Shown here piece after piece: positions 17,362-56,451 of a stretch of DNA of 64,000 nucleotides. The DNA lies in the IMG/VR virus record IMGVR_UViG_3300032116_000001, positions 1-64,000 of that record; one strand, given 5' to 3'. Position numbers and translations under genes: made by a program. The notes beneath the pieces were generated by a model. That model did no database searches, was not told the DNA's origin, and worked only from the letters and a program-made list of their open reading frames with translations. How positions within the stretch are numbered: the first letter of the stretch is position 1; every line of letters starts with the position of its first letter.

Positions 17362-17709
17362 ATGAGTGAAGATTTTTTGAACGGTTTTGCTATCGGTGCT
17401 GTTGCGATTATAGTTATTTGGGTTTGCTCGGCAATTAAGGCGAGTATTCCAAAACCTACAAACATGGGGTGGCTCGATGGATCGGGTGATTGGATTGAGG
17501 TGGTTCGTATCGGTCACTCAGGAGTGACTGTGCGACATTGTGGGTATAATTCACGTAATTCACACTGGACATTTAGGCGCTGTGCAGAAGATGCTGGCTG
17601 GCCTCTTTCCAAGATGCTTGATTACCTGGGCCTTCCCGATGAAAAGACACTCAAGGAAGCTGACATGACCATGGGTGAATGGCTTTCACAAAAAAATAAA
17701 AATTCTTGA
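17362..17709 (+). CDS. membrane-anchored protein, paralog of 18211..18567
   Basis: N-terminal TM; CAxDAGW...LGLPDExxLKExxMTxGEWL shared. Confidence 0.75.
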   Translation: MSEDFLNGFAIGAVAIIVIWVCSAIKASIPKPTNMGWLDGSGDWIEVVRIGHSGVTVRHCGYNSRNSHWTFRRCAEDAGWPLSKMLDYLGLPDEKTLKEADMTMGEWLSQKNKNS

Positions 17710-17777
17710 AACTTTTCAAAGGTGATCGCCGTATAACAAAAGAACATACACAAAGCAAAAGCTTTAAGGACACAATT

Positions 17778-17846
17778 ATGACTCGCCGATATCTTTCACT
17801 GCTAGGACTCTTATCGCTTTCTCTTGAGAAAGCGGCGATTAGCTGA
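17778..17846 (+). CDS. Leu-rich leader peptide MTRRYLSLLGLLSLSLEKAAIS
   Basis: AAGGAC SD; 7 Leu codons in 22 aa; upstream of a terminator and two tRNA-Leu genes. Confidence 0.8.
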   Translation: MTRRYLSLLGLLSLSLEKAAIS

Positions 17847-17908
17847 TAGATTTTGCGATCAGTGTTTAATCCCCGATTTCTCTCAAGGAGTCGGGGATTT
17901 TTGTTTTT
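17815..17908 (+). promoter_or_regulatory. transcription attenuator (1:2, 2:3 and 3:4 terminator helices)
   Basis: 1:2 CGCTTTCT/AGAAAGCG; 2:3 GAGAAAGCGGCGATTA/TAATCCCCGATTTCTC; 3:4 AATCCCCGATTTC/GGAGTCGGGGATT followed by TTTGTTTTT. Confidence 0.8.
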
Positions 17909-17919
17909 GCGTTTCACAT

Positions 17920-18004
17920 ACCGCTCTGGAGTAGCCAAACTTGCTACAGGCAACAGTCTTAGAAACTGTCTCTTTTCTGGGTTGGAATCCCAGGGGCGGT
18001 ACCA
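17920..18004 (+). tRNA. tRNA-Leu (anticodon TAG), atypical
   Basis: ACCGCTC/GGGCGGT-ACCA; ACAGT-CTTAGAA-ACTGT; T-loop TTGGAAT. Confidence 0.75.
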
Positions 18005-18055
18005 ATATTGACAATAGAATAGAGGAAAGAGAAAATAGATTTTCGAGTGATAAAT

Positions 18056-18142
18056 GCGGACGTGGCGGAATTGGTTTACGCGCTACTTTGAGATGGTAGT
18101 CCCCGATTGGGGGTGTGGGTTCGAGTCCCACCGTCCGCACCA
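18056..18142 (+). tRNA. tRNA-Leu (GAG)
   Basis: Full cloverleaf, long variable arm, CCA. Confidence 0.95.
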
Positions 18143-18210: not shown

Positions 18211-18567
18211 TTGTCTAGTTGGCTGATCGGGTTGATTATCACGTTCTTTGTGATTTATTTTTTCTTCGGGAGTCAAAACCTTGATGATGAAGAAGAAGAT
18301 TTAGAGTACTTACATTCTTGGAAAGATGGAAATGGCTTTACGACTAAAGTAATCCAAATCGGTCACGATAAGATCGTTGTAGAAAATTTTAGCAGAAAGC
18401 GCGGGCGAAAAGTTCGGGTGTGGACTGTTGAAGAATGCGCCAAAGACGCAGGATGGTCAGTTGAAAAGATGAGAGATCATCTTGGCCTTCCCGATGAAAG
18501 CGCTTTAAAAGAAGTTGAAATGACTCTTGGCGAGTGGCTTCACGAAAAGAATCAACATCAAAGATAG
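18211..18567 (+). CDS. membrane-anchored protein, paralog of 17362..17709
   Basis: Paralogy; start uncertain. Confidence 0.7.
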   Translation: MSSWLIGLIITFFVIYFFFGSQNLDDEEEDLEYLHSWKDGNGFTTKVIQIGHDKIVVENFSRKRGRKVRVWTVEECAKDAGWSVEKMRDHLGLPDESALKEVEMTLGEWLHEKNQHQR

Positions 18568-20193: not shown

Positions 20194-20240
20194 CTAAAAA
20201 ATCCCCTGTTTTTCAATAGGGGATTTGATATATCAATTGT

Positions 20241-20375
20241 GCCAAGAAGCACTTGAAGTGCAGTCTACGGATATGCCTTATTAGGGCATGTGATTACTGC
20301 GTAGGAAGGACAGGGTGTAATGAAGTACGGTCGCGACGAAAAGTTACATCGGGTTAAAATCCCAACTTGGCACCA
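20241..20375 (+). ncRNA. 135-nt tRNA-like RNA
   Basis: GCCAAG/CTTGGC-ACCA acceptor, D-like and T-like hairpins, elongated internal arms, own promoter. Confidence 0.6.
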
Positions 20376-20397
20376 AATTGAAAAATGAGAATCTAAT

Positions 20398-20698
20398 CGG
20401 GGCGTGGCGAAATGGCAGACGCAGGGGACTTATAAAATGAGCACTTGTTTGTGAAAGCTGCAAGTGAATGCAATCAAATTCGGTGAAACCTTAACAGTTA
20501 GGCTGATGGCAATACCGAGCCAAGCTAACTCAAAACAGAGTTAGAAGGTGTAGAGACTAGATGGTTGCTGCCTAAGTCGAAAGATATGGCAAAGGTATAG
20601 TCCAGACCACAAAATCCTTTGGGATCGTAGTGAAAGCTATAGTGGTATGAAAATCCCTTAGTAGCAATACTGTGTGGGTTCGAGTCCCACCGCCCCGA
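20398..20698 (+). tRNA. tRNA-Leu (TAA) interrupted by a group I intron
   Basis: Exons 20398-20431 and 20650-20698; joining them restores GGGGA-CTT^AAAA-TCCCT. Confidence 0.92.
20432..20649 (+). mobile_element. group I intron (tRNA-Leu UAA type, IC3-like), 218 nt, no ORF
   Basis: Inserted after the U of the anticodon, ends in G; P AAATTCGGTGAAA, Q AATACCGAGC, R GTAGAGACTAGATGG, S AAGGTATAGTCC. Confidence 0.9.
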
Positions 20699-20748
20699 TT
20701 AGGTTATATATTGATTACTAATGCGCTTTGTGTGCTTTTAGTATAAGA

Positions 20749-21246
20749 ATGTTTGTGTCACGTTTGCAAAAATATACCCTAGAGGAGATAAAAGAAATAA
20801 TATCTAAATCAAAATCTTATGCTGAAGTAATTCGATCTATTGGTTTAATTCCTGCTGGTGGAAATTACAAAACATTGCAAAGTTTTGTACATGAATACCG
20901 AATTGATACTTCGCATTTTCTGGGCTCAGCTTGGGGGCGAGGAAACCAATTGGATTATCTCCACAATAGCAATAGAAAATCATTAGAAGATGTTTTTTCG
21001 GGAAAAGTAGCTTATAAATCAAGCCATAAATTAAGGCTTCGGCTGATTAAAGAAGGATATTTTGAGCATAAATGCTATAAATGTGGACTAAAAGAGTGGC
21101 AAGGACACGAAATACCCTTGGAATTAGAGCATATAAATGGAGATCATTGTGATAACAGTCTCGAAAACCTCATTATTCTTTGCCCCAACTGTCATGCTCA
21201 AACAGAAACTTATGCTGGTAAAAACAAAAAAAGACGATTAGGTTAA
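20749..21246 (+). CDS. HNH homing endonuclease
   Basis: CYKCG...LELEHINGDHCDNSLENLIILCPNCH. Confidence 0.9.
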   Translation: MFVSRLQKYTLEEIKEIISKSKSYAEVIRSIGLIPAGGNYKTLQSFVHEYRIDTSHFLGSAWGRGNQLDYLHNSNRKSLEDVFSGKVAYKSSHKLRLRLIKEGYFEHKCYKCGLKEWQGHEIPLELEHINGDHCDNSLENLIILCPNCHAQTETYAGKNKKRRLG

Positions 21247-22784: not shown

Positions 22785-22991
22785 ATGGACCCATTTCTTT
22801 TTTATTCTACCTATTTTATCTTGGGACTTGGTTTTATGTTCGCATTGATGGCAATCGGAGCGCATCACTATACCAATGGCCCATCTCGTGAACAAGAACA
22901 AAAACAAAGAATCAAGTTTATTATTCTATCAGTGCTTTTAATAGCTAGTGCAATTTTTCTGGGCCGTTATGCTGCGGGTCTGCTTTTTTGA
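22785..22991 (+). CDS. small membrane protein
   Basis: Promoter motif; 2 TM. Confidence 0.7.
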   Translation: MDPFLFYSTYFILGLGFMFALMAIGAHHYTNGPSREQEQKQRIKFIILSVLLIASAIFLGRYAAGLLF

Positions 22992-23057
22992 TTTCATTCT
23001 CTTGAAATGGTTTTAAAAAATCCCCTTTTTTCAGAAAACCAAATCAATATAAAAAAT

Positions 23058-23378
23058 ATGCGAATTCGACCGCAATCCGACCCGAACAAGGAATATCTCA
23101 TCGACTTTTACTACCCGTATGGGAAGCAAGGACACAAGAAGAAGGGCACCAAGACTGTCTGCACTATCTCTGTCGGCCCTGTGGGTAGTCTCGACAAGGA
23201 CAAGACCGAAGTCTCGACCACTACCGTTCGCCGACATAGTACCGATCAGGACAATCTTGTCGTAGCTCGTAATTATGCACTGGCCAAGGCCCTATCCCCG
23301 ATTGAAGCTAGTGTCCGACAAGAGATTTGGGAACAGGCTCCGATTCGACGAGCAGACATTTCCCTGGAACTCGACTAA
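23058..23378 (+). CDS. hypothetical phage protein
   Basis: Promoter motif; followed by an inverted repeat at 23391-23426. Confidence 0.7.
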   Translation: MRIRPQSDPNKEYLIDFYYPYGKQGHKKKGTKTVCTISVGPVGSLDKDKTEVSTTTVRRHSTDQDNLVVARNYALAKALSPIEASVRQEIWEQAPIRRADISLELD

Positions 23379-23505
23379 ACTCCAAAAACATTCTCATTGA
23401 GGGAGAATTTAATCCCTCAATGAGAAAAAACAAAAAACTGCTAACAAAAAGCAGGTGATCGTCGTATAATAAGAGAAGAAACTGAAAAGCACAAAGAGCT
23501 ATATT

Positions 23506-23628
23506 ATGAATCATCTCTTATCGACGACAATATGTGGAACAACAGGAACCTCAACAAGAGGAATCCTTTCCCTTGGCGTTATCGGCAAGGATAGTGATTC
23601 TGATTCAGGAGAACCCATCGAATCGTAG
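23506..23628 (+). CDS. Gly/Ser/Thr-rich leader peptide (40 aa)
   Basis: MNHLLSTTICGTTGTSTRGILSLGVIGKDSDSDSGEPIES; run of GGA/ACA/TCA codons; upstream of a terminator and tRNA-Gly/Ser/Thr. Confidence 0.8.
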   Translation: MNHLLSTTICGTTGTSTRGILSLGVIGKDSDSDSGEPIES

Positions 23629-23689
23629 CTTTACTGTGATTACAGAACAAAGAGGCTCGATTCGATAAGATCGAGCCTCTTTTCTTTTT
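23617..23689 (+). promoter_or_regulatory. transcription attenuator (antiterminator overlapping the leader stop, plus terminator)
   Basis: 2:3 ATCGAATCG(T)AGCTTT/GAGGCTCGATTCGAT; 3:4 AAAGAGGCTCGAT/ATCGAGCCTCTTT followed by TCTTTTT. Confidence 0.8.
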
Positions 23690-23818
23690 AGATATGATGT
23701 CTGGGAAGAGAAAGATCGAATATTGAAAATTTCATACAGGTATAGATATAAAAGTGTTAGGGGGTGTTGGATCGATCTTTGATCGCAGGCCTCACCCCCT
23801 TGATCGAGACACATTTTC

Positions 23819-23892
23819 GCGAGATTGGTATATGGGTTGTGCCCTAGCCTTCCAAGCTAGAGAAAAGGGTTCGAATCCCTTATCTCGCTCCA
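23819..23892 (+). tRNA. tRNA-Gly (TCC)
   Basis: GCGAGAT/ATCTCGC-TCCA; CTAGC-CTTCCAA-GCTAG. Confidence 0.95.
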
Positions 23893-23943
23893 ATTTAAGA
23901 CACATTTCTTTGTGCTGCCAATGGGCAGCTTTCAAAAGAAAAC

Positions 23944-24030
23944 GGATGGGTGACAGAGCGATCTATTGTAGCGGTCTTGAAAACCGCCGTGCCAAAAGCA
24001 CCGTGGGTTTGAATCCCACCCCATCCTCCA
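23944..24030 (+). tRNA. tRNA-Ser (TGA)
   Basis: GGATGGG/CCCATCC-TCCA; long variable arm. Confidence 0.92.
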
Positions 24031-24128
24031 TTTTGTAACAAAATCATAAAATTCAAAGCAGGTGTAGCTCAGTGGTAGAGCGCCCGCCGCGAAGGTTGAT
24101 GGTTGCAATATCGATAAATAGATTATGT

Positions 24129-24545
24129 ATGGCAATAACAAAATACAAAGGAGCCGTCGGGCTAACTAATGTAATGGCCTGTCTTGTCAATCAAAAAGCA
24201 AAAATCTTTGTTCCAATAGACGAAGACTGTCAATATGACCTGGTGGTAGATTATCAAAATTATCTTTACAGAGTGCAAGTTAAATATGCTGAGGCAAAAA
24301 ATGGCAAGATCGTTGTAAAGACGCGCTCAACGAATAACTATTGTGAAATTCGTTATACTAAAGATCATTTTGACGTGATTGCTGTTTGGGACAATGTTGG
24401 CAAAAAAGCATATTTTATTTCATCGAATTTAATCACAGAAGGAATGACGGAAATGACCTTGAGATTAGATGCACCAAAAAACAATCAAACTAAAAACATA
24501 AGATTGGCTCGTAATTATGAGCAATTTAATGCTGCGGTCGCATAG
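24129..24545 (+). CDS. PD-(D/E)XK homing endonuclease (I-Ssp6803I/PDDEXK_5-like)
   Basis: YDLVVD...RVQVK...YTKDHFD...LRLDAPKNNQ. Confidence 0.85.
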   Translation: MAITKYKGAVGLTNVMACLVNQKAKIFVPIDEDCQYDLVVDYQNYLYRVQVKYAEAKNGKIVVKTRSTNNYCEIRYTKDHFDVIAVWDNVGKKAYFISSNLITEGMTEMTLRLDAPKNNQTKNIRLARNYEQFNAAVA

Positions 24546-24613
24546 TGGTCGATTGCACCTCTCTTGTAAAGAGGAACTCCACACCGTGGGTTCGAATCCC
24601 ACCCGTAGCTCCA
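24531..24613 (+). tRNA. tRNA-Thr (TGT)
   Basis: GCTGCGG/CCGTAGC-TCCA; CCTCT-CTTGTAA-AGAGG; overlaps the endonuclease stop. Confidence 0.9.
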
Positions 24614-24725
24614 TTTTTCGCACATATGTGTCAGGGGTTCGAATCCCCTCTCCTGCTTTGAGTTGAGTGATGATATCCGATCATAAAAAATCCCCCTTTT
24701 TCTCAATAGTGATCGGATATATAAA

Positions 24726-25325
24726 GTATTGCTGTGAGCTAAATCAATTGACACAGCATGATGAAACCAAAATCATCTAAAAACAATAAGGTGCTCCATA
24801 TACGTCTGGGAAAGATAAATTAGACGTGGACACACTGTGATGTGGACTAATCACAGCGCACTGGGGCATGTGTGCAAGCCCGAAAAGCCTATCTTTACTG
24901 ATATAGTTAAAGAGAAAGAGCAGAGAGTTAAGGCTTAAAATAAACTCCATGCGTTCGTAAGGATGAACTCAAAGACGAGTTCAGTTATGACTAGGATACG
25001 AGAGGAGGGAGGCAATGAGTTTCTCTCCTCTCCCCGACAAAGCGATTTCCGACTGCTCATCGGAGAAGTGATCTAGTAAAACACTCAGAAAAACACTAGC
25101 GTAGGAAATGCGTTAATCCCTGATTTTTTATCGGTTTTTAGAGACAAAAAACTGTTCGTATAGGGCTTGCGGTAAGCCTCTTGTTTTAGCTAGGTGATCC
25201 TGTATGTAAAAACCAAGCGGATGGAACAAATCAATTTGTTTTCGCGAGCAAATGATCCATTGACTTTGGGGAACAGCGTAAGAACGTTTCGCCATGAGGC
25301 TTTGAGCAAAGTCTCGTTCCCCAAA
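24726..25325 (+). ncRNA. large structured ncRNA (~600 nt), ROOL/GOLLD-like
   Basis: No + strand ORF of 60 aa or more, own promoter, many helices, located between tRNAs. Confidence 0.65.
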
Positions 25326-25339
25326 AATAAAAAGATTCT

Positions 25340-25416
25340 GGGTATGTAGTTCAGTTGGTTAGAGCACCTGCCTGTCACGCAGGAAGTCGCGAGTTCAAGT
25401 CTCGTCATATCCGCCA
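25340..25416 (+). tRNA. tRNA-Asp (GTC)
   Basis: Canonical cloverleaf, CCA. Confidence 0.97.
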
Positions 25417-43482: not shown

Positions 43483-43850
43483 GTGACTGGGAACAAGAAA
43501 GGGGGAAGTAACTCCCTCTTTCTTTATGACTTTCCGTGATTATGCGCCACGATCATTAAAAATCCCCTATATCTTATATTCCAATCGGATATATAAGATA
43601 TAATGAAAACCAAACATGTTTTTCGAGTTTACCCCAAGAATGCAACATCTTCCGAGGATGCTTTGGTAATTGAGAAAACCATAAGCCCGAAATCTGTCCT
43701 TCGAGTAATGGGAAACCTTCTTGGCAAGTATAATGCTTCAGAAGTGGCTTTATTGAAATCCGAGGACAAATAAGACTTTTTTAACAAAAAGTCCCAAAAT
43801 CATAGGACGATTTTGTTTTTTGATCGTATAATAGATAAGGACACTTTATT

Positions 43851-43943
43851 ATGAAGACCCACACCACATCAAATACGAATATGGTCTTCACCCGACGCAA
43901 TTCCGCGACGGGCGTCCAACAACGCTGTCGGCGTTCCGCTTAA
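43851..43943 (+). CDS. Gln/Arg/Cys leader peptide MKTHTTSNTNMVFTRRNSATGVQQRCRRSA
   Basis: AAGGAC SD; CAA CAA CGC TGT CGG CGT codon run; upstream of tRNA-Gln x2, tRNA-Arg x2 and tRNA-Cys. Confidence 0.75.
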   Translation: MKTHTTSNTNMVFTRRNSATGVQQRCRRSA

Positions 43944-44032
43944 GTCGGGCTGACACGTTACCACCTGCAAGTAACTTCTTTTTCGAAGAATTAGCCCGCT
44001 CTCTGAGCGAGACGTCGATTATCATCTCGTGC

Positions 44033-44106
44033 TCGGGGATCGTCTAGAGGCAGGACTCTGGTCTCTGGAACCAGAAGCGGTGGTTCGAATCCATCTCTCC
44101 GAGCCA
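44033..44106 (+). tRNA. tRNA-Gln (CTG)
   Basis: TCGGGGA/TCTCCGA-GCCA; CTGGT-CTCTGGA-ACCAG. Confidence 0.93.
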
Positions 44107-44113
44107 GCTTCAC

Positions 44114-44199
44114 TGGGTCTTAGGCGAATTGGTAGAGCCGCCTGTCTTTGGAACAGGACTCCTGAAAAGGTGGAGGTTCGAATCCTCCCGACCCAGCCA
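44114..44199 (+). tRNA. tRNA-Gln (TTG) with enlarged variable arm
   Basis: CCTGT-CTTTGGA-ACAGG; GCCA end. Confidence 0.88.
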
Positions 44200-44271
44200 A
44201 TTAAAGGCTTTATGCATTTTGAAAAAATAATTAAAAAAGGCTTTCTTAACAGAAGTACATAATTAAAACGA

Positions 44272-45057
44272 GTGATTCAAACTTCCAATAAGAAAACAAG
44301 AGTAAAGCGCAGTCGAATTTGGACGATGCCTAAAGACGAGTTCGCTCAACTAGTGGCCTCAAGTCAAACTTATGTCGAAATTCTCCGAGCCATTAACTAC
44401 ACCATACGAGGAGGAGCTTTTCGAATTTTAAAAGAACGAATTGCGACAGAAATGATCGACGATTCACATATATTAAAGAATGGAAGGCAAACCATTTATG
44501 CCCATAGATTCAATACTCGGTCAGATGACGATATATTTTGCGAAAATTCTACATACAATAGTGGCCCTGCCCTGAAAAAGAGAATGATTAAGCTAGGCTT
44601 ACCTGAAGAATGCACAAAATGTGGGCTTGGTGCAACATGGAATGATGAACCTCTATCTCTGCAAGTAGACCATATCAATGGGGTGCGCAACGATAACAGA
44701 TTAGAGAATTTGAGGCTTCTGTGCCCAAATTGTCATTCTCAAACCGAAAATTTTGCTGGCAGAAAGTTGAACGCAAAAAACAAATCATGTCCAGAATGCT
44801 GCGCTAAGATCAGTGGATACCGTAAAGATCAGAGATGCCAATCTTGTGCCAATAAGATCAGGTCTAGAGAAATGCAACTAATATCAAAACCATCAAAAGA
44901 CGAGCTTCAAGATATGTTGTGGAAAATGCCCGCGACTAGGATTGCTAAGATATACAATGTGTCCGATAAAACAGTTGGTAATTGGGCTAAATCCTACAAA
45001 ATTGACAAACCGAGCCGTGGACACTGGGTCAAAAAAAATACTCCCCCCCCCTTGTAG
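44272..45057 (+). CDS. HNH homing endonuclease with C-terminal zinc-finger/HTH
   Basis: LQVDHINGVRNDNRLENLRLLCPNCHSQT; ATRIAKIYNVSDKTVGNW. Confidence 0.9.
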   Translation: MIQTSNKKTRVKRSRIWTMPKDEFAQLVASSQTYVEILRAINYTIRGGAFRILKERIATEMIDDSHILKNGRQTIYAHRFNTRSDDDIFCENSTYNSGPALKKRMIKLGLPEECTKCGLGATWNDEPLSLQVDHINGVRNDNRLENLRLLCPNCHSQTENFAGRKLNAKNKSCPECCAKISGYRKDQRCQSCANKIRSREMQLISKPSKDELQDMLWKMPATRIAKIYNVSDKTVGNWAKSYKIDKPSRGHWVKKNTPPPL

Positions 45058-45123
45058 CTTAATGGATAGAGCGCAGCACTTCGGATGCTGATGTTATGGG
45101 TTCGAGTCCTATCGAGGGGGCCA
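45048..45123 (+). tRNA. tRNA-Arg (TCG)
   Basis: CAGCA-CTTCGGA-TGCTG; overlaps the HNH stop. Confidence 0.9.
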
Positions 45124-45134
45124 AAATTTAAAAC

Positions 45135-45210
45135 ACGCCTGTAGCTCAGTGGATAGAGCATCAGCTTGCGGAGCTGAGGGTCGGAGGTTCGAACCCTCTC
45201 AGGCGTGCCA
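45135..45210 (+). tRNA. tRNA-Arg (GCG)
   Basis: TCAGC-TTGCGGA-GCTGA; GCCA end. Confidence 0.92.
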
Positions 45211-45216
45211 ATATAC

Positions 45217-45291
45217 GGCCACGTACCCAAATGGTTAAGGGCTCCCTCTGCAAAAGGGATGTTGCGAGTTCGATTCTCGCCGTGGCCTCCA
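45217..45291 (+). tRNA. tRNA-Cys (GCA)
   Basis: GGCCACG/CGTGGCC-TCCA; U73 discriminator. Confidence 0.95.
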
Positions 45292-47706: not shown

Positions 47707-47823
47707 GCTTTATATATCCGATTGTGCTACGGCAGAAAGGGGATTTTTTATGACTTTCTAAGGTTATGTGCCACGATCATAAAAAATCCCTTGCTTTTTG
47801 TGTTTCAAGCGGATATATAAGAT

Positions 47824-48300
47824 ATGTTGATTTTGCCTAAGTTTCACAGCCGATTTGGTGATAAGGGTTTTGCACGCACGCTAGGCAGGCTTATCAGATT
47901 TTATTTTTGGCCTGTTGCCTTTTTTGTCATTTCTCTTGTCTGCCGATTTCAGACTAACCATCATGCAGCGTTTATCTTTAGTGTAGCCACACTGGGAGTG
48001 GTAATCGTTCTGTGCGTTTTATCGGGGTTCGTTGCAAAACTTTCTGAGTCAAGCAATGAACAAGTAGATGCTTTTTGGGCTTTTCTTTCGCATACGGCAA
48101 AGGGCATTTCTGTTGGGTTTTCGCTTTCTGTTTTGAGTTTCATCTTGTGCGTGGCAAGCGTTGTAATTTATAACACCCAAGTCAATGACTTGGTGTCTAT
48201 AACTCTATCGTCTCTTATCGTGGCAAATCTTGTGGTAATGGGCTCTATCGTAAAAGAAACCTTTGAAGACATCGTGCTTGCTTTTAGGGAGCAAAAATAA
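47824..48300 (+). CDS. multi-pass membrane protein
   Basis: 4 TM; promoter motif. Confidence 0.7.
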   Translation: MLILPKFHSRFGDKGFARTLGRLIRFYFWPVAFFVISLVCRFQTNHHAAFIFSVATLGVVIVLCVLSGFVAKLSESSNEQVDAFWAFLSHTAKGISVGFSLSVLSFILCVASVVIYNTQVNDLVSITLSSLIVANLVVMGSIVKETFEDIVLAFREQK

Positions 48301-48394
48301 TGCGACACTATATCATTTTTATGACTTTCTACGATTGTGTGGCACGATCATAAAAAATCCCCCTAATAAAGCTGAGTAATCGGATATATAATGT

Positions 48395-48474
48395 GGGGCA
48401 AATAGCTCAGTAAAGACATATGGGAATGTAACAGTAGAGGTTTCCGCGTATGTTCAAATCCTGTTGCTCCACCA
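48395..48474 (+). ncRNA. tRNA-Ala-like mini RNA lacking an anticodon arm
   Basis: GGGGCAA/TTGCTCC-ACCA with G3:U70; own promoter. Confidence 0.55.
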
Positions 48475-48515
48475 AAAATCCCCTATATTTTCCGCGTTCA
48501 TGCCATATATAAACT

Positions 48516-48698
48516 ATGGCAAAATACACTGTCACCTGCTACAATCCTCACTGCGGCCAAAATGGTCAAGTCATCAATAAAATTGACGTTGACGAGGCTA
48601 ACGAAAATCTACTCGTAGAAAACTTTGGTCAAGGAGGAGAAGATGAAGAAGATTTTTGTGAAGAGTGCGGAATGTTAGGGGTTTTGGAAGAAGCCTAA
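48516..48698 (+). CDS. small Cys-containing protein
   Basis: Promoter motif; CxxxxC...CxxC. Confidence 0.65.
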   Translation: MAKYTVTCYNPHCGQNGQVINKIDVDEANENLLVENFGQGGEDEEDFCEECGMLGVLEEA

Positions 48699-48737
48699 AA
48701 CCATTTTTTGAGGAAAAAATCGAAGGAGAAAATCGAA

Positions 48738-49055
48738 GTGAACAACCAAACCGTAACAATCCCGCAGGTGGGCATGGGAGCCACTCAATGCGTCGGCTCT
48801 GACCGACGAGCGTATACAGTCGTTGAAATTATCAATGACCGAAAAATTGTCCTCCAGCGAGACAAGGTAAAGCGCATCGACTCGAACGGTTTTAGCACAG
48901 AACAAAAGTACTCTTATGAACCAAACCCCAATGGTCACGAAGTTGTTGTGACTTTACGCAAGAATGGACGATGGTGCGAGGTTGGAGAGGCCATCGACAA
49001 CGGAGTTCAATATGTAGTTGGGCATCGAAAAGAATACGACGACCCGCACTTCTAA
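48738..49055 (+). CDS. hypothetical phage protein
   Basis: AGGAG SD with GTG start; PQVGMGAT...SDRRAYTV...YDDPHF. Confidence 0.7.
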   Translation: MNNQTVTIPQVGMGATQCVGSDRRAYTVVEIINDRKIVLQRDKVKRIDSNGFSTEQKYSYEPNPNGHEVVVTLRKNGRWCEVGEAIDNGVQYVVGHRKEYDDPHF

Positions 49056-49192
49056 AACAAAAGCAAAAGACAATGGTATCTAAGAAAATGATGCCATTGT
49101 CTTTTGCGAAAAAATCGAAAAATCGTGGCACACAATCGCAGAAAGTCATAAAAAATCCCTTATCTTTGAGATTCTAATCGGATATATAAATT

Positions 49193-49405
49193 ATGAAGAA
49201 GTTTCTCCTTTTCGCTGGCGAATATACTCCCGAGGGAGGAATGAAAGATTTTCAGGCCTCTGATGACAATGTCGATGCTCTTTACAGAATTTTGTCTTAC
49301 GAAATGGTCAAGCATGATTGGCGATGGTGGCATATTGTTGATAGAGACACTATGAACATTGTTTCAGACAGCAAGTTCCCCGAAGATGGTCCGACCCGAG
49401 TGTAA
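49193..49405 (+). CDS. hypothetical protein, paralog of 49407..49604
   Basis: MKKFLLFAG...WWHIV shared. Confidence 0.75.
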   Translation: MKKFLLFAGEYTPEGGMKDFQASDDNVDALYRILSYEMVKHDWRWWHIVDRDTMNIVSDSKFPEDGPTRV

Positions 49406-49406
49406 A

Positions 49407-49604
49407 ATGAAGAAGTTTCTCCTTTTCGCTGGCTCTTTCCCAAATGAGGGGCAAGGCTGGCGAGATTATAAGTTCACAGCAGATACGATAGGGGAGGTTC
49501 ACGCCTTCCTTGCCAACTACATGGTAAACGAAATGGTGGGCTGGTGGCATATTGTATCTGCGGAAACGATGGAAATTGTAGATAATAACAAGCCGATTCA
49601 TTGA
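49407..49604 (+). CDS. hypothetical protein, paralog of 49193..49405
   Basis: Paralogy. Confidence 0.75.
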   Translation: MKKFLLFAGSFPNEGQGWRDYKFTADTIGEVHAFLANYMVNEMVGWWHIVSAETMEIVDNNKPIH

Positions 49605-49723
49605 TAAGGGCAATTCGTTGAAAAGCGAAAAGTCCTTTTTTCACGCCTTAATGATCGTGCCGCACAATCGTAGAAAGTCATAAAAAATGGGGGCCAATCC
49701 CCCATTTTTTATCTTAGTCCTTT

Positions 49724-50599
49724 TTAGGCCGTCGCCAGTTCTTTCTTTGCTTCCAGGCTCTTGGCCTTGCCTCGGCCCATAATGAAGTTTGCGGCTTTCC
49801 CCGCAAGTCCTGCGGCCTGCACGACCATTTTGGGGTCGTCATTCAGAACCTTGAGCCAGCCCTGAATATAGGCCTGGGTGTTCTCGGTGTCATTGTCGAT
49901 GCCGATTTCTTGGCAGAGAAAGGCGGCTGTGAGTTCTGCTACCAGTTCCTCGCGGCTGTAACCTTCCTTGTCAAGCGTTGAGATTTGCATGACTTCGGGT
50001 CGAGCCAATCGGGATTCGTGGCCCGTCGCGTGACCAAGTTCATGGAATAAGGTCGCGTAATAGGCTTCGGAACTGACAAAAGATTCGATAATAGGCATTT
50101 GGACCCAATCGCCATAAGGCGAATAACAGGCACGATTTCCACCGTGACGAATCTCAGGCACCAGCGGCATTTCTTGGACCACTTCCTCACAACGTTCGAT
50201 GCGGCGATTGTCTTTCAGTTCCTCAATCGGCGGCAGGTCGAGCCCTTCGGTTTGCTCCACATTGAAAACATAAAATTGCTTCAATACGGGGTAGGAACCT
50301 GTCTTGCCAGTCTTATCATCCTCATAACTCACCTGCTTCCAGAACACAATCGGTGTGCCCTTCTCGCCCTTCTTGATTCGCCCGCCCATCTTGTTGATTT
50401 GATTGCAAGTCATCCAGCGCGGGTCGGCAAAGGTAGACATTGACAAAAGCAGAAGGTTGAGCCCGCTATACTTGGTTCCGCTACTGGGGTTGCAGGGTCG
50501 AATCACCGACCAGGGTCGCTTCCAAGCAACGTTTCCGCTCTTTAGGCCCTCGATGATGGTGTTGGTTACGATTTCGTAGACTTCGGACTTCTTCTTCAT
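49724..50599 (-). CDS. ardC: ArdC-like antirestriction protein (ssDNA-binding + zincin-like)
   Basis: WKRPW, YSGLN, IKKGEKG, VFNVEQ, YYATLFHELGHATGH, YSREELVAEL, AYIQGW. Confidence 0.92.
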   Translation of the reverse strand: MKKKSEVYEIVTNTIIEGLKSGNVAWKRPWSVIRPCNPSSGTKYSGLNLLLLSMSTFADPRWMTCNQINKMGGRIKKGEKGTPIVFWKQVSYEDDKTGKTGSYPVLKQFYVFNVEQTEGLDLPPIEELKDNRRIERCEEVVQEMPLVPEIRHGGNRACYSPYGDWVQMPIIESFVSSEAYYATLFHELGHATGHESRLARPEVMQISTLDKEGYSREELVAELTAAFLCQEIGIDNDTENTQAYIQGWLKVLNDDPKMVVQAAGLAGKAANFIMGRGKAKSLEAKKELATA

Positions 50600-50738
50600 T
50601 AGTCTGCCTCTCTTTATATATCCGATTAGACTACGATAGAAAGGGGATTTTTTATGGCTTTCTGAGATTATGGGCCACGATCATTAAAAATCCCCTTTTC
50701 AAGTAAATTCATATAATATAATAGAAAGAAAGGCAAAA

Positions 50739-50906
50739 TTCGCCCGAATTAAATATCGGATTAATGAAGCGAACACATGAATAAATCATGTGGTGACATT
50801 GAAAATAAAGAGGCCGTAAAGATAAGACTTGGCATCCAAGTCAATGCCGTGAAGCCAAGGGCCAACGACATCTGGTGGAGCCTTACCACCACCGAGGCGA
50901 AAAATT
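50739..50906 (+). ncRNA. putative structured ncRNA, copy B (related to 26489..26634)
   Basis: Shared end blocks with copy A. Confidence 0.55.
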
Positions 50907-50960
50907 ACTTGACAATCGGAAAAATCCCCCTTTTCCACTAACACAATCGGATATATAAGC

Positions 50961-51064
50961 AGGTGTCCAGGGGGCGGTGAAAGTCCGCAAGGCGGCTGCA
51001 GAGTCATGAATCTGCAGTGCGGCTGGTTTCCTCTGCGCTTGCGCAAGACCACCCTGGCGAGCCT
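50961..51064 (+). ncRNA. GC-rich structured RNA / 5' leader
   Basis: CCAGGG/CCCTGG, GCGG/CCGC, CTGCAGA/TCTGCAG and TGCGC/GCGCA helices directly after a promoter. Confidence 0.5.
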
Positions 51065-51079
51065 TCACAAGAGAGAAAT

Positions 51080-51292
51080 ATGCACGAGTTTGGTATAACT
51101 TTCCAAAACATCCATGGCGAAACATATGACAGCCCCGAATATGTTGGTCTTACGCTGCCGTTTCGCCCAAATGTTGGTGATGAAATCCTGATTGTGGGGG
51201 CAGGAGGAAAATCCTACAGAGTCTTGAAAGTTGAATATTGCGCTGGGCCATCGTTTGGTGACTTTCTTCTCACCGTCGAACCCGTGGTGTAA
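51080..51292 (+). CDS. hypothetical protein
   Basis: LPFRPNVGDEI. Confidence 0.6.
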   Translation: MHEFGITFQNIHGETYDSPEYVGLTLPFRPNVGDEILIVGAGGKSYRVLKVEYCAGPSFGDFLLTVEPVV

Positions 51293-51333
51293 AAAATCCC
51301 CTATATCTTTTCATCACAAAAGATATAACAAGT

Positions 51334-51570
51334 ATGCTGGAACAGCTGACTCTTGAACATCACGGCGACTTTCATTGCGTGCGTGAGTTTTGGGATTGTG
51401 AATGTGATGATGATTACATTCGGGGCAATGATGACCACAAGTGCGAAAAGTGCGGCATTGAACGCGATGATGCGCCAAACTCTCGACTGACCGAAGTGAT
51501 TGAACGCTATCCCGATTTGGAGAACGTTCCCTGGGTCATTGACCAAGCGTCCAAGAGCTTCATTCACTAA
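51334..51570 (+). CDS. small zinc-binding protein
   Basis: FWDCEC...CEKCG...PNSR. Confidence 0.7.
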   Translation: MLEQLTLEHHGDFHCVREFWDCECDDDYIRGNDDHKCEKCGIERDDAPNSRLTEVIERYPDLENVPWVIDQASKSFIH

Positions 51571-51665
51571 AGGTTCAAACAAAAAAGAGGGCATTGCCCT
51601 CTTTTTTATAACTTTCCATGATTATGGGCCACGATCATTAAAAATGGAAACAAAAAAATGAGACC

Positions 51666-51848
51666 CTATAAGGGCCTCTCGGAGATTTCTTTCTTCCATT
51701 CGGTAATGGTTCGATACCATCCTGGGTACGTATCGGTTTTCCATCCGCCTTGGTATCTAAAGATATTACAAACCGCCACCCAGCCGTGACCATTGTGATA
51801 GCCAATTTGCTTCGAGCCGTCTGACAAAACCGTGGTTTGGATTCTCAT
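51666..51848 (-). CDS. hypothetical protein
   Basis: Coupled to 51845..52057. Confidence 0.55.
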   Translation of the reverse strand: MRIQTTVLSDGSKQIGYHNGHGWVAVCNIFRYQGGWKTDTYPGWYRTITEWKKEISERPL

Positions 51849-52057
51849 TGCGACTTTGCATTGCTGCGAACTTGGCAGCAGTGACAGGGAAAAAACATGT
51901 TATTCACCAAAATCATAAGAATGGCGACATTAAGCCAATCTTGAGTATCAAGTGGAATGCCCAGCGAGAAAACAGAATTACACAGCACAAGAAGAGCCAA
52001 CGGGATGAGAGTGATTGTGTTATTGATGATATTGTTCTTGATGGTCGAAAAACTCAC
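51845..52057 (-). CDS. small membrane protein
   Basis: Reverse promoter motif, GTG start. Confidence 0.65.
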   Translation of the reverse strand: MSFSTIKNNIINNTITLIPLALLVLCNSVFSLGIPLDTQDWLNVAILMILVNNMFFPCHCCQVRSNAKSQ

Positions 52058-52146
52058 ACTTTATATATCCGATTAGACCACGAAAAACAAGGGATTTTTC
52101 AATAATCGTGACACATAATCTCAGAAAGTTATAAAAAATCCGCTTC

Positions 52147-52587
52147 CTAAAAGGAAACGGATTTGAGTGTGTCTAGTATGGCTTCGTTCGATTTGATTTC
52201 GGCTTCCATTTCTTTAAGTCTTTGTTTAGCCCGAGGTATCGAATCCGATAAACGCCTAATTCTATCCTTTCTCCACTTTTCAAGATTCCCCCGCAAAATG
52301 TCATTGTCCAAAATCGCTTTCACCACCAAGTCCTGAAGTTCTTGAGGCACTTGAAACGACTGGCGTCCAGGTCCATGTTTATTGGGCTCCCATCCTTTGA
52401 AACGCCATTCACCGTTATCAAAAGTTGCGCTAATAACATGGCTCATTTGCCTAAAGTGAATAATAGGGGCATTTGAAAGAAGAGTTCCATAACCGACTTC
52501 AAACTGATTGTTATAGTGTCCTTCACCCATGAAACACACCCCATATTTGCCCAAATCACCTTGGTGGTTATAACATCTTGTGTTCAC
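52147..52587 (-). CDS. hypothetical protein
   Basis: Reverse promoter motif. Confidence 0.7.
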   Translation of the reverse strand: MNTRCYNHQGDLGKYGVCFMGEGHYNNQFEVGYGTLLSNAPIIHFRQMSHVISATFDNGEWRFKGWEPNKHGPGRQSFQVPQELQDLVVKAILDNDILRGNLEKWRKDRIRRLSDSIPRAKQRLKEMEAEIKSNEAILDTLKSVSF

Positions 52588-52627
52588 ACTTTATATATCC
52601 GATTAGGCCATGAAAAACAAGGGATTT

Positions 52628-52972
52628 TTATCGAACCCAGTGAATTGCCACGGTTCGCTCACCCTGTTGAAGCCCCAGCCCGTGAACACTTGGCTTGCTT
52701 ACAGCAATTTCACGCGCTTCCTCGAAAGTCTTAGTTACTAGGTCGCCAGTCAAATCATAAATGGCACTCCACGCTTCTGCATCTTGCTCAGACGCGAAAG
52801 TAGCCAAAAGACCAACCGTCATAGGGTCTGGCGCAGGAGTCGTTGCATTTACAGCCGCAAAACGACCACTACCAAGTGAAATCATCACTACAGCATCGGG
52901 GAAAGATTCATCCCCGCCAAGAACATCATTGACTTCAATGTCCAAATCACTCAGAATATCTTCGAGGGGCAC
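52628..52972 (-). CDS. hypothetical protein
   Basis: Reverse promoter motif. Confidence 0.7.
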   Translation of the reverse strand: MPLEDILSDLDIEVNDVLGGDESFPDAVVMISLGSGRFAAVNATTPAPDPMTVGLLATFASEQDAEAWSAIYDLTGDLVTKTFEEAREIAVSKPSVHGLGLQQGERTVAIHWVR

Positions 52973-53646
52973 CCTTTATATATCCGATTAGAACAAGAAA
53001 AACAAGGGATTTTTATGACTTTCTACAATCATGTGCCACACCCAAAGAACACACCAAAATCTCGGATGGAGCGAACACACTTTTGTGCGCCGCTCAAGCC
53101 GAGAAACATACAGAAAACAGAAAATGCCAGAATACTTAGATGCTACATGGTTTTGTTCTCCTCGATGGTGTTTCGCATATTGATTTGATTTTCCTTCGAG
53201 TTTAGAGCTGTTGCCAACTCTTCTTTATATATCCGATTAGAGCCATGCAAAAAGGGGATTTTTTATATAATGATCGTATCACATAATCTCGGAAAGTCAT
53301 AAAGAAAGGCCCCATTTTAGGGGCCTTGTTTTCTTAGACGCTAGTCGTCATAATCGTCATTCCGACGTTCTTTTCCTCGGCGGCGAGACCAATTTAGGTC
53401 CTCACGAGCATGCTTCCCCGCCTTTTCTTTCTTTCTCTTGTTTTTGATGTCTTTGGGCACTAGCCCCCAGTGTTTTTCTGGCCAATCCGAGTTTCGGTTG
53501 GGATTCATCATTACCCTCCTTTTTATATATCCGATTGAAACCATTCAAAAAGGGGATTTTTATAATGATCGTGGCGCATAATCGCAGAAAGTTATAAAGA
53601 AAGGGGCATTAGCCCCTAGTCTTTACTTATGCCCCAGAAGGCAACT

Positions 53647-53841
53647 TCACTTAGCCGTCGGCTTGAGATAAAACATTCCGTCAGTGGCGTCCACACGTTC
53701 AAGAGGTAATTGTTCAGTCACCCCAAGTGACTCCGCAAAACCAAGAAGCGAATAATACGCACTTTCCACCACGCCCATGTCGTTGTCAAGAAGCTCATTG
53801 AAGAGTAGAAGGAATTGCTTTTGTATGAGTCCCTTATTCAC
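53647..53841 (-). CDS. hypothetical protein
   Basis: Reverse promoter motif. Confidence 0.65.
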   Translation of the reverse strand: MNKGLIQKQFLLLFNELLDNDMGVVESAYYSLLGFAESLGVTEQLPLERVDATDGMFYLKPTAK

Positions 53842-53881
53842 TCTTTATATATCCGATTAGAACACGAAAGAAAAGGGATTT

Positions 53882-54277
53882 TTATGAAGCCCACTCGAAG
53901 CGATTCCGCTCAATATGATTCTGAAACACGCGGACAACGGCATCAATGTCCGTGAGTTTTTCATACTCCATATGAGTGTTGAGGCCACCACGGTAGTCCT
54001 TTTGCCCCTTAACGCATCGATAGTAGAACTCAGGTCGCGGAATGCTTCCACCCAGGTGAACATAAAGATTGTCCGAGTGCAAAATCACTTCACCAAGACA
54101 AGCCACGCCAGCCTTGTTTGAGCGAATAGAATACTGCCCGTCTCTCAGGCCAAGACCGTGAGCAATTTCTTCAAGATACTGCTTTGCAAGACGATGAAAA
54201 GTTCGCTTAGCCCTATCATTATAGCCACTATGGGTGGAAGCGATATGAGCCATCATCCTAATGTCTTTAACGTCCAT
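53882..54277 (-). CDS. hypothetical protein of mobile elements
   Basis: IRSNKAGVACLGEVILHSDNLYV...YYRCVKGQKDY. Confidence 0.7.
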   Translation of the reverse strand: MDVKDIRMMAHIASTHSGYNDRAKRTFHRLAKQYLEEIAHGLGLRDGQYSIRSNKAGVACLGEVILHSDNLYVHLGGSIPRPEFYYRCVKGQKDYRGGLNTHMEYEKLTDIDAVVRVFQNHIERNRFEWAS

Positions 54278-54408
54278 GGTTTGTTCCTACATTATATATC
54301 TGATTGAAATACAAAAGAAAAGGGATTTTTTATAATGATCGTGGCGCATAATCTCAGAAAGTTATAAAGAAAGCCCCGTTTTCAGGGGCATTTCTTTGAA
54401 GTCAGTTA

Positions 54409-54870
54409 TTAGAACCCAAAAGACGGGGTTTTCAGCAAGGTGGGCAGTTCTTGAATCGGCACCAACTTCACCTTCCCGTTGGTCTTTTGGTGGACCAAAT
54501 CCGCCCACTTTTCATCCAAGTGCGTGTTAGCGTTGTAAACGATGAGCCCGCCGTCGTAATTCCCGATAATGCTCATCAATCGGGCCACATTGTTCTTCAC
54601 CATAGACCCGATGTAAAGTTGCTGGGTGGCGAAGATTTCAACGGCAATTTTCTTGCCGTTAGTCACCACTTCAAGGTCAATGGTGTGTTCAAATCCAGGC
54701 CGCTCAACGACCGCTTGCGGAACAACCATACCCTTTCCAACGACGGCCTCGAAGGCCTGTTGGACAACAAGTTCGAGCTGAGAGTGCTCGTTGCTGGTGG
54801 AGCGGAAAAGCTTTAGGGGCCAATTGTCGGGGATTTGAAGAAGGGCGACGATGGTTGCAATCTCAGTCAT
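54409..54870 (-). CDS. possible PD-(D/E)XK nuclease-fold protein
   Basis: TIDLEV...KIAVEIF; GAGG SD; reverse promoter. Confidence 0.5.
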   Translation of the reverse strand: MTEIATIVALLQIPDNWPLKLFRSTSNEHSQLELVVQQAFEAVVGKGMVVPQAVVERPGFEHTIDLEVVTNGKKIAVEIFATQQLYIGSMVKNNVARLMSIIGNYDGGLIVYNANTHLDEKWADLVHQKTNGKVKLVPIQELPTLLKTPSFGF

Positions 54871-55275
54871 GATTGTTTTCCTCTCCTTATATATCAGATT
54901 GGGCTACGAAAGAAAGAGGATTTTTTATGACTTTCTGCGATTGTGTGACACAATTCAATGCAAGCCAAATATAAACAAAATCCCTGGCCACGGAGCCTCA
55001 TGCTCATGCGCGACCAGGGTGCCGTCAGTTTTTGGATAATCTCTATACTGTTTGCAACCAATATAGAACCACGTAATCGCGTCCTGAGACTGACCGTTGC
55101 ATTTTCACGCTCTGCAACTAGAGGGGAAGCGGATACTCTTTGGTGTGCAGTCCACTTCTCAGCACTAGCGAGGTTGAGGCCTCGTTCTTCTTATATATCC
55201 GATTAGGCCAATGTAAAAAGGGGATTGTTTATAAAAAAACCCCCGCATTTTCAAACACAATCGGATATATAAAAT

Positions 55276-55674: not shown

Positions 55675-55771
55675 ATCTCAGGGGCAAAATAAGCCCTTGA
55701 TATTTACTTTTATAACCAAAATGATCGTGCCACACAATCGTAGAAAGTTATAAAAAAGACTAGGGCAAGCC

Positions 55772-55960: not shown

Positions 55961-56000
55961 GCCTTATATATCCGATTGGGACAAAACAAACGGGGGATTT

Positions 56001-56396: not shown

Positions 56397-56451
56397 TTTC
56401 TGTTAACCTCTGTCTTATATATCCGATTAGAATACGAAAGAAAGGGGTTTT

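Follow-up and report, generated by a model that had tools for sequence, protein, structure and literature searches.

We analysed a 64 kb window (positions 1 to 64,000 of IMG/VR record IMGVR_UViG_3300032116_000001). This is the promoter-dense, tRNA-rich region of a jumbo phage of about 380-420 kb. The cassettes and tRNA units described here are on the plus strand. We focused on a tRNA unit that includes tRNA-Gly(TCC) (23819-23892), tRNA-Ser(TGA) (23944-24030) and tRNA-Thr(TGT) (24531-24613), the last with an 11-nt variable region. An earlier note had proposed that a multi-input Gly/Ser/Thr attenuator lies upstream of these genes. Every element listed in that note is present. Two details required correction. 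The terminator stem is 14 bp, rather than 13 bp, and tRNA-Thr is separated from tRNA-Ser by a disrupted tRNA and an endonuclease gene. The 5' fragment of the disrupted tRNA (24058-24088) includes the acceptor, D arm and 5' anticodon stem. The 3' fragment (24630-24657) includes the T arm and acceptor. Inserted in the disrupted tRNA is a PD-(D/E)XK endonuclease ORF (24129-24545; Pfam PF11645, E = 4e-23), which is called as a gene in other assemblies. No group I intron was found here, relaxed ARAGORN could not rebuild an intron-containing tRNA, and blastn could not assign an identity to the disrupted tRNA. The next major promoter motif is at 24686. Hence, the unit ends at the 3' fragment.

Upstream of tRNA-Gly is a promoter-like box, AGGTGATCGTCGTATAATAA (23453-23472), with a -10 element TATAAT at 23465-23470. 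A scan for sigma70-like sites gives CTAACA-18-TATAAT, matching at 10/12 positions. The box is followed by a start context, AAGAGCTATATTATGA (23494-23509), with an SD-like AAGAG 8 nt before the ATG. The leader ORF runs from the ATG at 23506 to a TAG ending at 23628. It encodes 40 amino acids, MNHLLSTTICGTTGTSTRGILSLGVIGKDSDSDSGEPIES, of which 6 are Gly, 7 are Ser and 6 are Thr (19/40). A cluster of candidate regulatory codons, TCG ACG ACA ATA TGT GGA ACA ACA GGA ACC TCA ACA AGA GGA, occupies 23521-23562. Within it, the string GGA ACA ACA GGA ACC TCA ACA lies at 23536-23556. A late TCA GGA lies at 23605-23610. Downstream of the ORF is a predicted intrinsic terminator hairpin (23649-23682) with 14 pairs (6 G-C), a 6-nt loop and the tail TCTTTTTAGA. 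The T tract is at 23683-23690. The predicted antiterminator 5' strand (23617-23632) spans the stop codon (23626-23628). Here, 23617-23631 pairs with 23652-23666, in the 5' arm and loop of the terminator, as 9 + 6 bp with one bulge. This is the MFE structure of the transcript before the 3' arm of the terminator exists. The two hairpins have nearly equal energy: -19.8 kcal/mol for the antiterminator and -21.1 kcal/mol for the terminator.

We next asked if these features exceed chance expectation. Only 1 of 1000 dinucleotide shuffles of the upstream 45 nt reaches the antiterminator duplex energy of -19.4. Furthermore, among 38 strong terminator-like hairpins in the window, this one has the strongest upstream complementarity (z = -4.8, rank 1). 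GGA, ACA and TCA make up 10 of the 39 codons after the start, compared to 3.4% in 47 promoter-defined genes (binomial 5e-7). As a conservative null, we took all mechanical ATG ORFs of 15-80 codons in six frames; 5 of 670 reach that fraction. With wobble partners added, the count is 13/39. This enrichment is frame-specific: there are 13 such codons in the ATG frame and 2 and 2 in the other frames.

Of particular note, the leader is one of three paralogous cassettes in the window, here termed L1, L2 (the Gly/Ser/Thr leader) and L3. The sequence AGGTGATCGYCGTATAAYAA occurs only at 17720 and 23453, against 0.01 expected. The looser pattern GATCG-N0-3-TATAAY and the start context AAGnnC-N3-5-ATTATGA each occur exactly three times in the 64 kb, always together and always before a multi-tRNA unit. 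The start context hits are at 17766, 23494 and 43837.

L1 has the promoter-like box AGGTGATCGCCGTATAACAA (17720-17739), which is invariant in two related strains. Its leader ORF (17778-17846; 22 codons) encodes MTRRYLSLLGLLSLSLEKAAIS, with 7 Leu; 6 of the 21 codons after the start are CTN. The predicted structures of L1 have the full trp-type 1:2, 2:3 and 3:4 anatomy. Briefly, an anti-antiterminator (1:2) hairpin, CGCUUUCUC/GAGAAAGCG (17814-17835; -10.4 kcal/mol), overlaps the last Leu codons. The antiterminator 5' strand (17826-17841) pairs with 17867-17882 (-20.3 kcal/mol; reached by 3 of 1000 shuffles). The 14-bp intrinsic terminator and T tract occupy 17868-17909 (-20.6 kcal/mol). This terminator ranks third of the 38 in the window for upstream complementarity. 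A tRNA-like element (17920-18004) begins 10 nt after the T tract and has an acceptor, T arm, CCA and, in the Rfam alignment, the anticodon-loop CUUAGAA. It scores 25 bits with the Rfam tRNA model, below the 29-bit threshold, and relaxed ARAGORN gives ambiguous calls. tRNA-Leu(GAG) follows at 18056-18142.

L3 has the box GATCGTATAAT followed by AAGGACAC (43822-43844) and a 30-codon leader ORF, MKTHTTSNTNMVFTRRNSATGVQQRCRRSA (43851-43943). The run CAA CAA CGC TGT CGG CGT lies at 43917-43934. It is the only run of at least 6 such codons in all six frames, unique in 128,000 codon positions (expected 0.23). The downstream unit (44033-45291) comprises tRNA-Gln(CTG), tRNA-Gln(TTG), an HNH endonuclease ORF (44272-45057), tRNA-Arg(TCG), tRNA-Arg(GCG) and tRNA-Cys(GCA). 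The next major promoter is at 45291. We found no recognisable intrinsic terminator in L3. A long-range helix pairs 43927-43953 with 43991-44019 (z = -4.55).

Each leader is enriched in codons read by its own downstream tRNAs. In a 3x3 matrix of leaders against cognate codon sets, the diagonal values for L1, L2 and L3 are 6/21, 13/39 and 8/29 (binomial 9e-4, 4e-7 and 3e-3). All off-diagonal cells are non-significant. Enrichment appears only in the ATG frame, with counts across the three frames of 6/2/2, 13/2/2 and 8/4/4. On the conservative mechanical-ORF null the individual p-values are modest (0.003, 0.015 and 0.031) but combine to give Fisher 1.5e-4. The scoring also flagged an out-of-frame ORF inside a real gene upstream of tRNA-Leu(CAA), which looks like a compositional false positive. 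As a negative control, we applied the same scoring to 9 tRNA clusters of Rhodobacter phage RcXuper and Rhizobium phage RHph_I1_18. No upstream ORF scored better than p = 0.02.

To examine how a ribosome might influence folding, we used a footprint model. In both L1 and L2, the stop codon lies inside or next to the antiterminator 5' strand (segment 2), and 20-21 nt before the terminator stem (20 and 21 nt in the two cassettes). For L2, the antiterminator stays formed (P = 0.98-0.99) for stalls at every Gly/Ser/Thr codon of the cluster and at the late TCA GGA (0.99 and 0.98). The value drops from the next codon on; segment 2 is masked only when the A site is on the last five sense codons or the stop codon. 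For L1, P(antiterminator) is 0.09 with no ribosome. It rises to 0.6-0.8 with the A site on codons 2-13, which include five of the seven Leu codons, and is 0.05-0.2 from codon 14 (the last two CTT codons) to the stop codon. No anti-antiterminator was found in L2. Its default state in the model is read-through, and termination needs a closely coupled ribosome.

Comparative evidence is thin. Exact-protein look-ups found the locus in dozens of assemblies, all 100% identical over L2, so there is no covariation. Only L1 has a diverged strain. This carries CTC to CTA (Leu to Leu) in the leader and one change in a loop, with none in any stem. However, the divergence is mosaic (flanks 92-99.7%, cassette 98%) and does not demonstrate selection. 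A blastn search of 22900-25400 against 50,697 phage records matched only tRNAs. Pattern scans of IMG/VR and JGI metagenomes, for the upstream protein, the major promoter, the cassette box, the shared 5'UTR and the combined cassette signature, returned only this phage; other hits had no tRNA downstream in the right orientation. No homologues of the flanking ORFs were found beyond the phage itself. The 40-codon ORF, which has only a weak SD-like element, is not on record as a called gene.

The interpretation best supported by these data is that L1 and L2 are ribosome-mediated transcription attenuators that feedback-control phage tRNA supply. We consider this probable, although it remains a computational inference without transcript ends or translation data. 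In this model, slow decoding of the test codons causes the ribosome to lag. The antiterminator (2:3) then forms before the 3' arm of the terminator is made, and RNA polymerase reads into the tRNA genes. Conversely, if decoding is fast, the ribosome reaches the last codons or the stop codon and covers segment 2. The terminator (3:4) forms and transcription stops. Because the regulated product is the tRNA that relieves the stall, the circuit would be a codon-specific negative feedback. The model infers that the ORFs are translated, that the hairpins terminate the relevant polymerase and that transcription and translation are coupled. Consistent with the earlier note, which had argued that a ribosome reaching the stop would block the antiterminator while an upstream stall would free it, every structural prediction that can be tested in silico was fulfilled for L2, except that no anti-antiterminator was found. 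Replication within the genome is what lifts the interpretation from plausible to well supported. L3 has the codon-matched leader but an unresolved output. Against this reading, the test codons are minor codons in the window's own genes. The benefit must lie elsewhere, for example in late genes that were not examined.

We considered three alternatives, each of which appears unlikely. The cassettes could be ordinary small genes or insulators, in which a host-type promoter drives a small peptide gene ending at a normal terminator and the codon match is coincidental. The tRNAs would then be made from other promoters or by constitutive read-through. Strong terminator-like hairpins are indeed common at gene ends in this genome, the conservative codon p-values are only modest, and the scoring produced one compositional false positive. 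Moreover, an orphan -10-like core, GATATAAAAG, lies at 23745, between the L2 terminator and tRNA-Gly, and TTGACA-17-GAAAAT lies at 18008-18036, just before tRNA-Leu(GAG). Part of tRNA expression may therefore bypass the switches. However, three of three cassettes match their own tRNA set and not the other sets, and only in frame. The near-equal hairpin energies and the first and third ranks for upstream complementarity also argue against this view, and the three peptides share no sequence similarity. Furthermore, there is no space for a promoter between the L1 terminator and the tRNA-like element, so RNA downstream must come from read-through.

It is also possible, though doubtful, that the roughly 170-210-nt transcripts from box to terminator are untranslated structured RNAs, acting as a protein sponge, an antisense regulator or a processing signal. 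All three leader RNAs fold much better than shuffles (z = -5.7, -5.3 and -4.6), and attenuator RNAs are known to act in trans in Sinorhizobium (PMC7968998). A sigma70-like site and terminator-like hairpins on the minus strand (23530 to 23390) would allow an antisense RNA, but nothing supports this beyond consensus matches. L2 has five GGA motifs, but these are mostly in stems in the MFE, rather than in exposed loops, and L1 and L3 show no such pattern. Hence, a CsrB/Rsm-type sponge is not supported. The ATG context, ATTATGA with an SD-like AAGGA or AAGAG 8-10 nt upstream, is the best-conserved part outside the promoter. Together with the frame-specific enrichment and the synonymous nature of the one substitution seen inside a leader ORF, this argues against incidental ORFs. 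Alternatively, the leaders could be translated codon sensors that control RNA processing, stability or factor-dependent termination of the tRNA precursor. This applies mainly to L3, and possibly to all three. In L3, the test codons and stop codon lie in one strand of the long helix of about 25 bp, which ends 13 nt before tRNA-Gln. In addition, most single tRNAs in this phage are simply co-transcribed behind ORFs and must be cut out. Conversely, the canonical hairpin-plus-T-tract terminators and matched antiterminators of L1 and L2 are unnecessary for a processing switch.

No known leader, riboswitch or sRNA family in Rfam matched. The only leader family hit is a minus-strand Thr_leader match over the L2 terminator hairpin, at 22.7 bits against a gathering score of 55; nothing was found for L1. 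T-box riboswitches sense tRNA status and act through a terminator/antiterminator choice, but bind uncharged tRNA directly through a specifier codon and the T-box sequence, and need no ribosome or ORF. There was no T-box hit in either L1 or L2, even at E <= 10. The closest parallels are probably the leader-peptide attenuators of enterobacterial amino-acid operons, such as trpL, hisL, leuL and pheL (PMC1183508). The parallels are a short ORF holding a run of regulatory codons, mutually exclusive terminator and antiterminator, and a stop codon placed so that a finishing ribosome masks segment 2. L1 also appears to have the 1:2 hairpin that gives termination without translation, whereas none was found in L2. 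L2 and L3 are multivalent, as thrL and ilvL appear to be. However, the controlled genes here are phage tRNA genes, not biosynthetic enzymes. The signal would therefore be decoding capacity for particular codons (A-ending GGA/ACA/TCA in L2), not amino-acid supply as such. The pheM leader of pheST probably provides a cellular precedent for control of the translation apparatus, but with a single amino-acid input and a synthetase as the target. An engineered hisL reporter shows that a leader-peptide attenuator can read out the translation speed of chosen codons (Chevance et al. 2014, PMC4046918). That laboratory construct drives his genes; the phage cassettes would be a natural version wired back to the tRNA genes.

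Our literature searches found no report of leader-peptide attenuation of tRNA genes. More likely than not, this jumbo phage carries a small family of natural codon-specific sensors; to our knowledge, this would be the first such case, and the first in which the sensed quantity is codon-level decoding capacity rather than amino-acid supply. Each tRNA operon would be transcribed only while decoding of its own codons is limiting. Such a circuit would show that a phage actively tunes the decoding capacity of its host and does not simply add tRNAs. It would extend leader-peptide attenuation from metabolic operons to RNA genes. The three natural variants, with different codon inputs on one chassis, would provide modular codon-speed sensors usable as reporters of tRNA availability. 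The arrangement, a short ORF matched to downstream anticodons together with a terminator/antiterminator pair, also gives a search pattern for other phages and bacteria. Finally, homing endonuclease genes embedded within a phage tRNA cluster are also seen in the phage T4 tRNA region, with SegB (PMC2330249), where no leader-peptide control has been described. In our window, the endonucleases are of the PD-(D/E)XK and HNH types.

The 64 kb studied here are the first part of a 378,848-bp IMG/VR contig. The same sequence also lies in a 420,993-bp ENA contig. The region encodes an rIIA-like protein, many small ORFs and at least 15 tRNAs. A highly conserved, promoter-like motif precedes nearly every gene. 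This consists of AAAAATCCCCTTTnTTn, about 13 nt, (ATCG)GATATATAA and then an ATG only 3-6 nt later. We found 70 matches against 0.9 expected (e.g. at 1932, 13619, 22743, 23016 and 24686 on the plus strand and at 47748-57851 on the minus strand). This implies leaderless or near-leaderless mRNAs. In the 378-kb contig the motif is confined to roughly the first 67 kb. In a subset of these major promoters (18580, 19750, 20197, 33444 and 33788) the AAAAATCCCC box pairs with a following GGGGATTT(T). The result is a hairpin with a T run that overlaps the promoter, so the site combines a terminator-like hairpin with a promoter. Single tRNAs mostly sit directly behind an ORF and are followed immediately by the next such promoter.

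An earlier note proposed an attenuator upstream of tRNA-Gly(TCC), tRNA-Ser(TGA) and tRNA-Thr(TGT). Everything that it described is present. The 40-codon leader ORF (23506-23628) has 19/40 Gly/Ser/Thr. A terminator with 14 pairs (23649-23682) and a T tract follows, with the three tRNA genes downstream. An alternative helix pairs 23617-23631 with 23652-23666. This helix is the MFE structure of the nascent transcript before the 3' arm of the terminator exists. Its energy is -19.8 kcal/mol, against -21.1 kcal/mol for the terminator. Only 1 of 1000 dinucleotide shuffles of the upstream 45 nt matched the complementarity, which is the strongest among 38 strong terminator-like hairpins in the window. 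The codon content of the ORF is also unusual. Together, GGA, ACA and TCA make up 10 of the 39 codons after the start, compared with 3.4% in 47 promoter-defined genes. With standard wobble partners the count is 13/39, while the other two frames of the same stretch hold 2 each. Downstream of tRNA-Ser(TGA), a tRNA gene has been broken into a 5' fragment (24058-24088) and a 3' fragment (24630-24657). The insertion carries a PD-(D/E)XK endonuclease gene and a complete tRNA-Thr(TGT) with an unusually long (11-nt) variable region. The endonuclease cassette seems to bring its own tRNA.

We next examined how the other tRNAs are arranged. The stretch before tRNA-Leu(GAG) opens with almost the same 20-mer as the Gly/Ser/Thr unit: AGGTGATCGCCGTATAACAA at 17720, against AGGTGATCGTCGTATAATAA at 23453. 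These are the only two matches in the window, against 0.01 expected. We refer to the Leu cassette as L1 and the Gly/Ser/Thr cassette as L2. In L1, the 20-mer is followed by a conserved 5'UTR and start context, and then by a 22-codon ORF, MTRRYLSLLGLLSLSLEKAAIS, with 7 Leu codons, 6 of them CTN. A 14-bp terminator with a T tract comes next (17868-17909). A tRNA-like element (17920-18004) begins 10 nt later and is followed by tRNA-Leu(GAG). The tRNA-like element has a good acceptor stem, T arm and CCA but an aberrant D region. Its anticodon loop reads CUUAGAA in the Rfam alignment (25 bits, below the threshold) and it is not called by ARAGORN.

A third, more diverged copy (L3) lies at 43822-43943, with GATCGTATAAT, AAGGACAC and ATTATGA. 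Its 30-codon ORF ends with CAA CAA CGC TGT CGG CGT. The unit behind it comprises tRNA-Gln(CTG), tRNA-Gln(TTG), an HNH endonuclease ORF (44272-45057), tRNA-Arg(TCG), tRNA-Arg(GCG) and tRNA-Cys(GCA). The endonuclease gene is inserted between the tRNA-Gln pair and the tRNA-Arg/Arg/Cys trio, and its 3' end overlaps the start of tRNA-Arg(TCG). The next major promoter follows at 45291. The run of six Gln/Arg(CGN)/Cys codons in the leader is the only run of at least six such codons in all six frames of the window, where 0.23 are expected. Two loose patterns, GATCG-N0-3-TATAAY and AAGnnC-N3-5-ATTATGA, each hit exactly three times in 128 kb of both strands. All hits are at these three places.

To compare codon matching across the three leaders, we derived cognate codon sets from the downstream anticodons by ordinary wobble rules. 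Each leader was then scored against each set. For leaders L1, L2 and L3, matches to their own sets are 6/21, 13/39 and 8/29, respectively, with binomial p of 9e-4, 4e-7 and 3e-3 against genic codon usage. The six remaining combinations are unremarkable, with p from 0.11 to 1. The enrichment is confined to the ATG frame. The harshest null that we could build used all mechanical ATG ORFs of 15-80 codons in six frames. Against this, p is 0.003, 0.015 and 0.031, and Fisher's combination gives 1.5e-4. We note that a generic version of this scoring also flagged an out-of-frame ORF inside a real gene upstream of tRNA-Leu(CAA), which looks like a compositional artefact. On nine tRNA clusters of two other phages the scoring gave nothing below 0.02.

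The predicted structure of L1 is that of a textbook three-hairpin attenuator. The 1:2 hairpin pairs 17814-17822 with 17827-17835 (-10.4 kcal/mol) and overlaps the last Leu codons. The antiterminator pairs 17826-17841 with 17867-17882 (-20.3 kcal/mol) and the terminator occupies 17868-17899 (-20.6 kcal/mol). To model the effect of a ribosome, we masked a 28-nt footprint at each A-site position and folded the transcript up to the terminator loop. In L1, the probability that the terminator 5' arm is held by upstream sequence is 0.09 with no ribosome. This becomes 0.6-0.8 with the A site on codons 2-13, which include five of the seven Leu codons, and 0.05-0.2 with the A site from codon 14 (the last two CTT codons) to the stop codon. 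In L2, the value is 0.98-0.99 with no ribosome, or with any stall up to and including the late TCA GGA. With the A site on the last five sense codons or the stop codon, segment 2 is masked, but a residual 0.66-0.78 remains. The residual value comes from a long-range pairing with the 5'UTR. In both cassettes the stop codon lies 20-21 nt before the terminator stem. Hence, a terminating ribosome covers segment 2 but not the terminator. L3 is different. No hairpin-plus-T-tract terminator exists between its stop codon and tRNA-Gln. Instead, the test codons and the stop codon form one strand of a long helix (43927-43953 with 43991-44019) that ends 13 nt before the tRNA. The whole L3 leader folds with z = -4.55, but its output is unresolved.

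We propose the following mechanism. A promoter of the GATCG...TATAAY type fires and a ribosome loads on the leader. If the codons served by the downstream tRNAs are decoded slowly, the ribosome lags, the 2:3 helix forms and the polymerase reads into the tRNA genes. Conversely, if they are decoded quickly, the ribosome reaches the end of the ORF and masks segment 2. The 3:4 helix then forms and transcription ends at 23683-23690 or 17900-17909. Because the product relieves the stall, this would be negative feedback on decoding capacity for specific codons. The proposal rests on sequence elements, energies, statistics and geometry. Translation of the leaders, termination by the relevant polymerase and coupling of transcription and translation are inferred. 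The data support the interpretation in the earlier note and extend it to a three-member family. We consider it likely, though not certain, that L1 and L2 are ribosome-mediated attenuators of tRNA operons.

Some of the tRNA expression could be independent of attenuation. An orphan -10-like core (GATATAAAAG, 23745) lies between the L2 terminator and tRNA-Gly, and is one of 4 such cores without the upstream motif. Similarly, a sigma70-like TTGACA-17-GAAAAT precedes tRNA-Leu(GAG). Either site could give attenuator-independent expression. However, there is no room for a promoter between the L1 terminator and the tRNA-like element that follows it. This argues that at least that RNA depends on read-through. 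The L2 SD-like element is poor and gene callers never call its ORF. Furthermore, the test codons are minor codons in the genes of this window. Comparison between genomes adds little. All other assemblies are identical over L2. One related strain covers L1, and shows a synonymous Leu change (CTC to CTA), a 1-nt insertion in the 5'UTR and a loop change, with no stem changes. This is weak evidence, as divergence in that strain is mosaic (flanks 92-99.7%, cassette 98%). Two paralogous ORFs of about 115 aa (17362-17709 and 18211-18567) flank the L1/tRNA-Leu unit. The related strain is 92% identical in the left one but 99.7% identical in the right one, which indicates mosaic recombination around the tRNA cassette.

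Functionally, the cassettes would work like the trpL, leuL and hisL attenuators, and the multivalent thrL and ilvL attenuators. They are not sequence relatives of any Rfam leader family and they are not T-boxes. They depart from these known attenuators in their target (tRNA genes), the sensed variable (decoding of particular codons) and the setting (a phage). Full-text literature searches found no report of such control of tRNA genes. The hisL-based codon-speed reporter shows that attenuators can read codon speed, which makes the proposal mechanistically reasonable (PMC4046918).

An unannotated tRNA-Leu(UAA) (20399-20700) appears to be split in its anticodon loop by a group I intron, found by Rfam at 20421-20624. 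This is the classical cyanobacterial/plastid insertion site and may hint at a cyanobacterial host. An HNH-like ORF follows at 20728-21246. Between a major promoter and the intron-containing tRNA-Leu is a structured RNA of about 135 nt (20239-20376). It is closed by GTGCCAAG...CTTGGCAC followed by CA, has a T-arm-like GGGTTAAAATCCC and has no Rfam match. About 650 nt with no convincing ORF (24686-25340) lie between a major promoter and tRNA-Asp. This stretch contains hairpins, for example at 25163-25179, and has no Rfam match in the part that was searched. Finally, CGATCG and GGATCC are both absent from the window (0 observed, about 11 expected each), although GATCG is twice as frequent as expected. 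This suggests avoidance of PvuI- and BamHI-type restriction sites.
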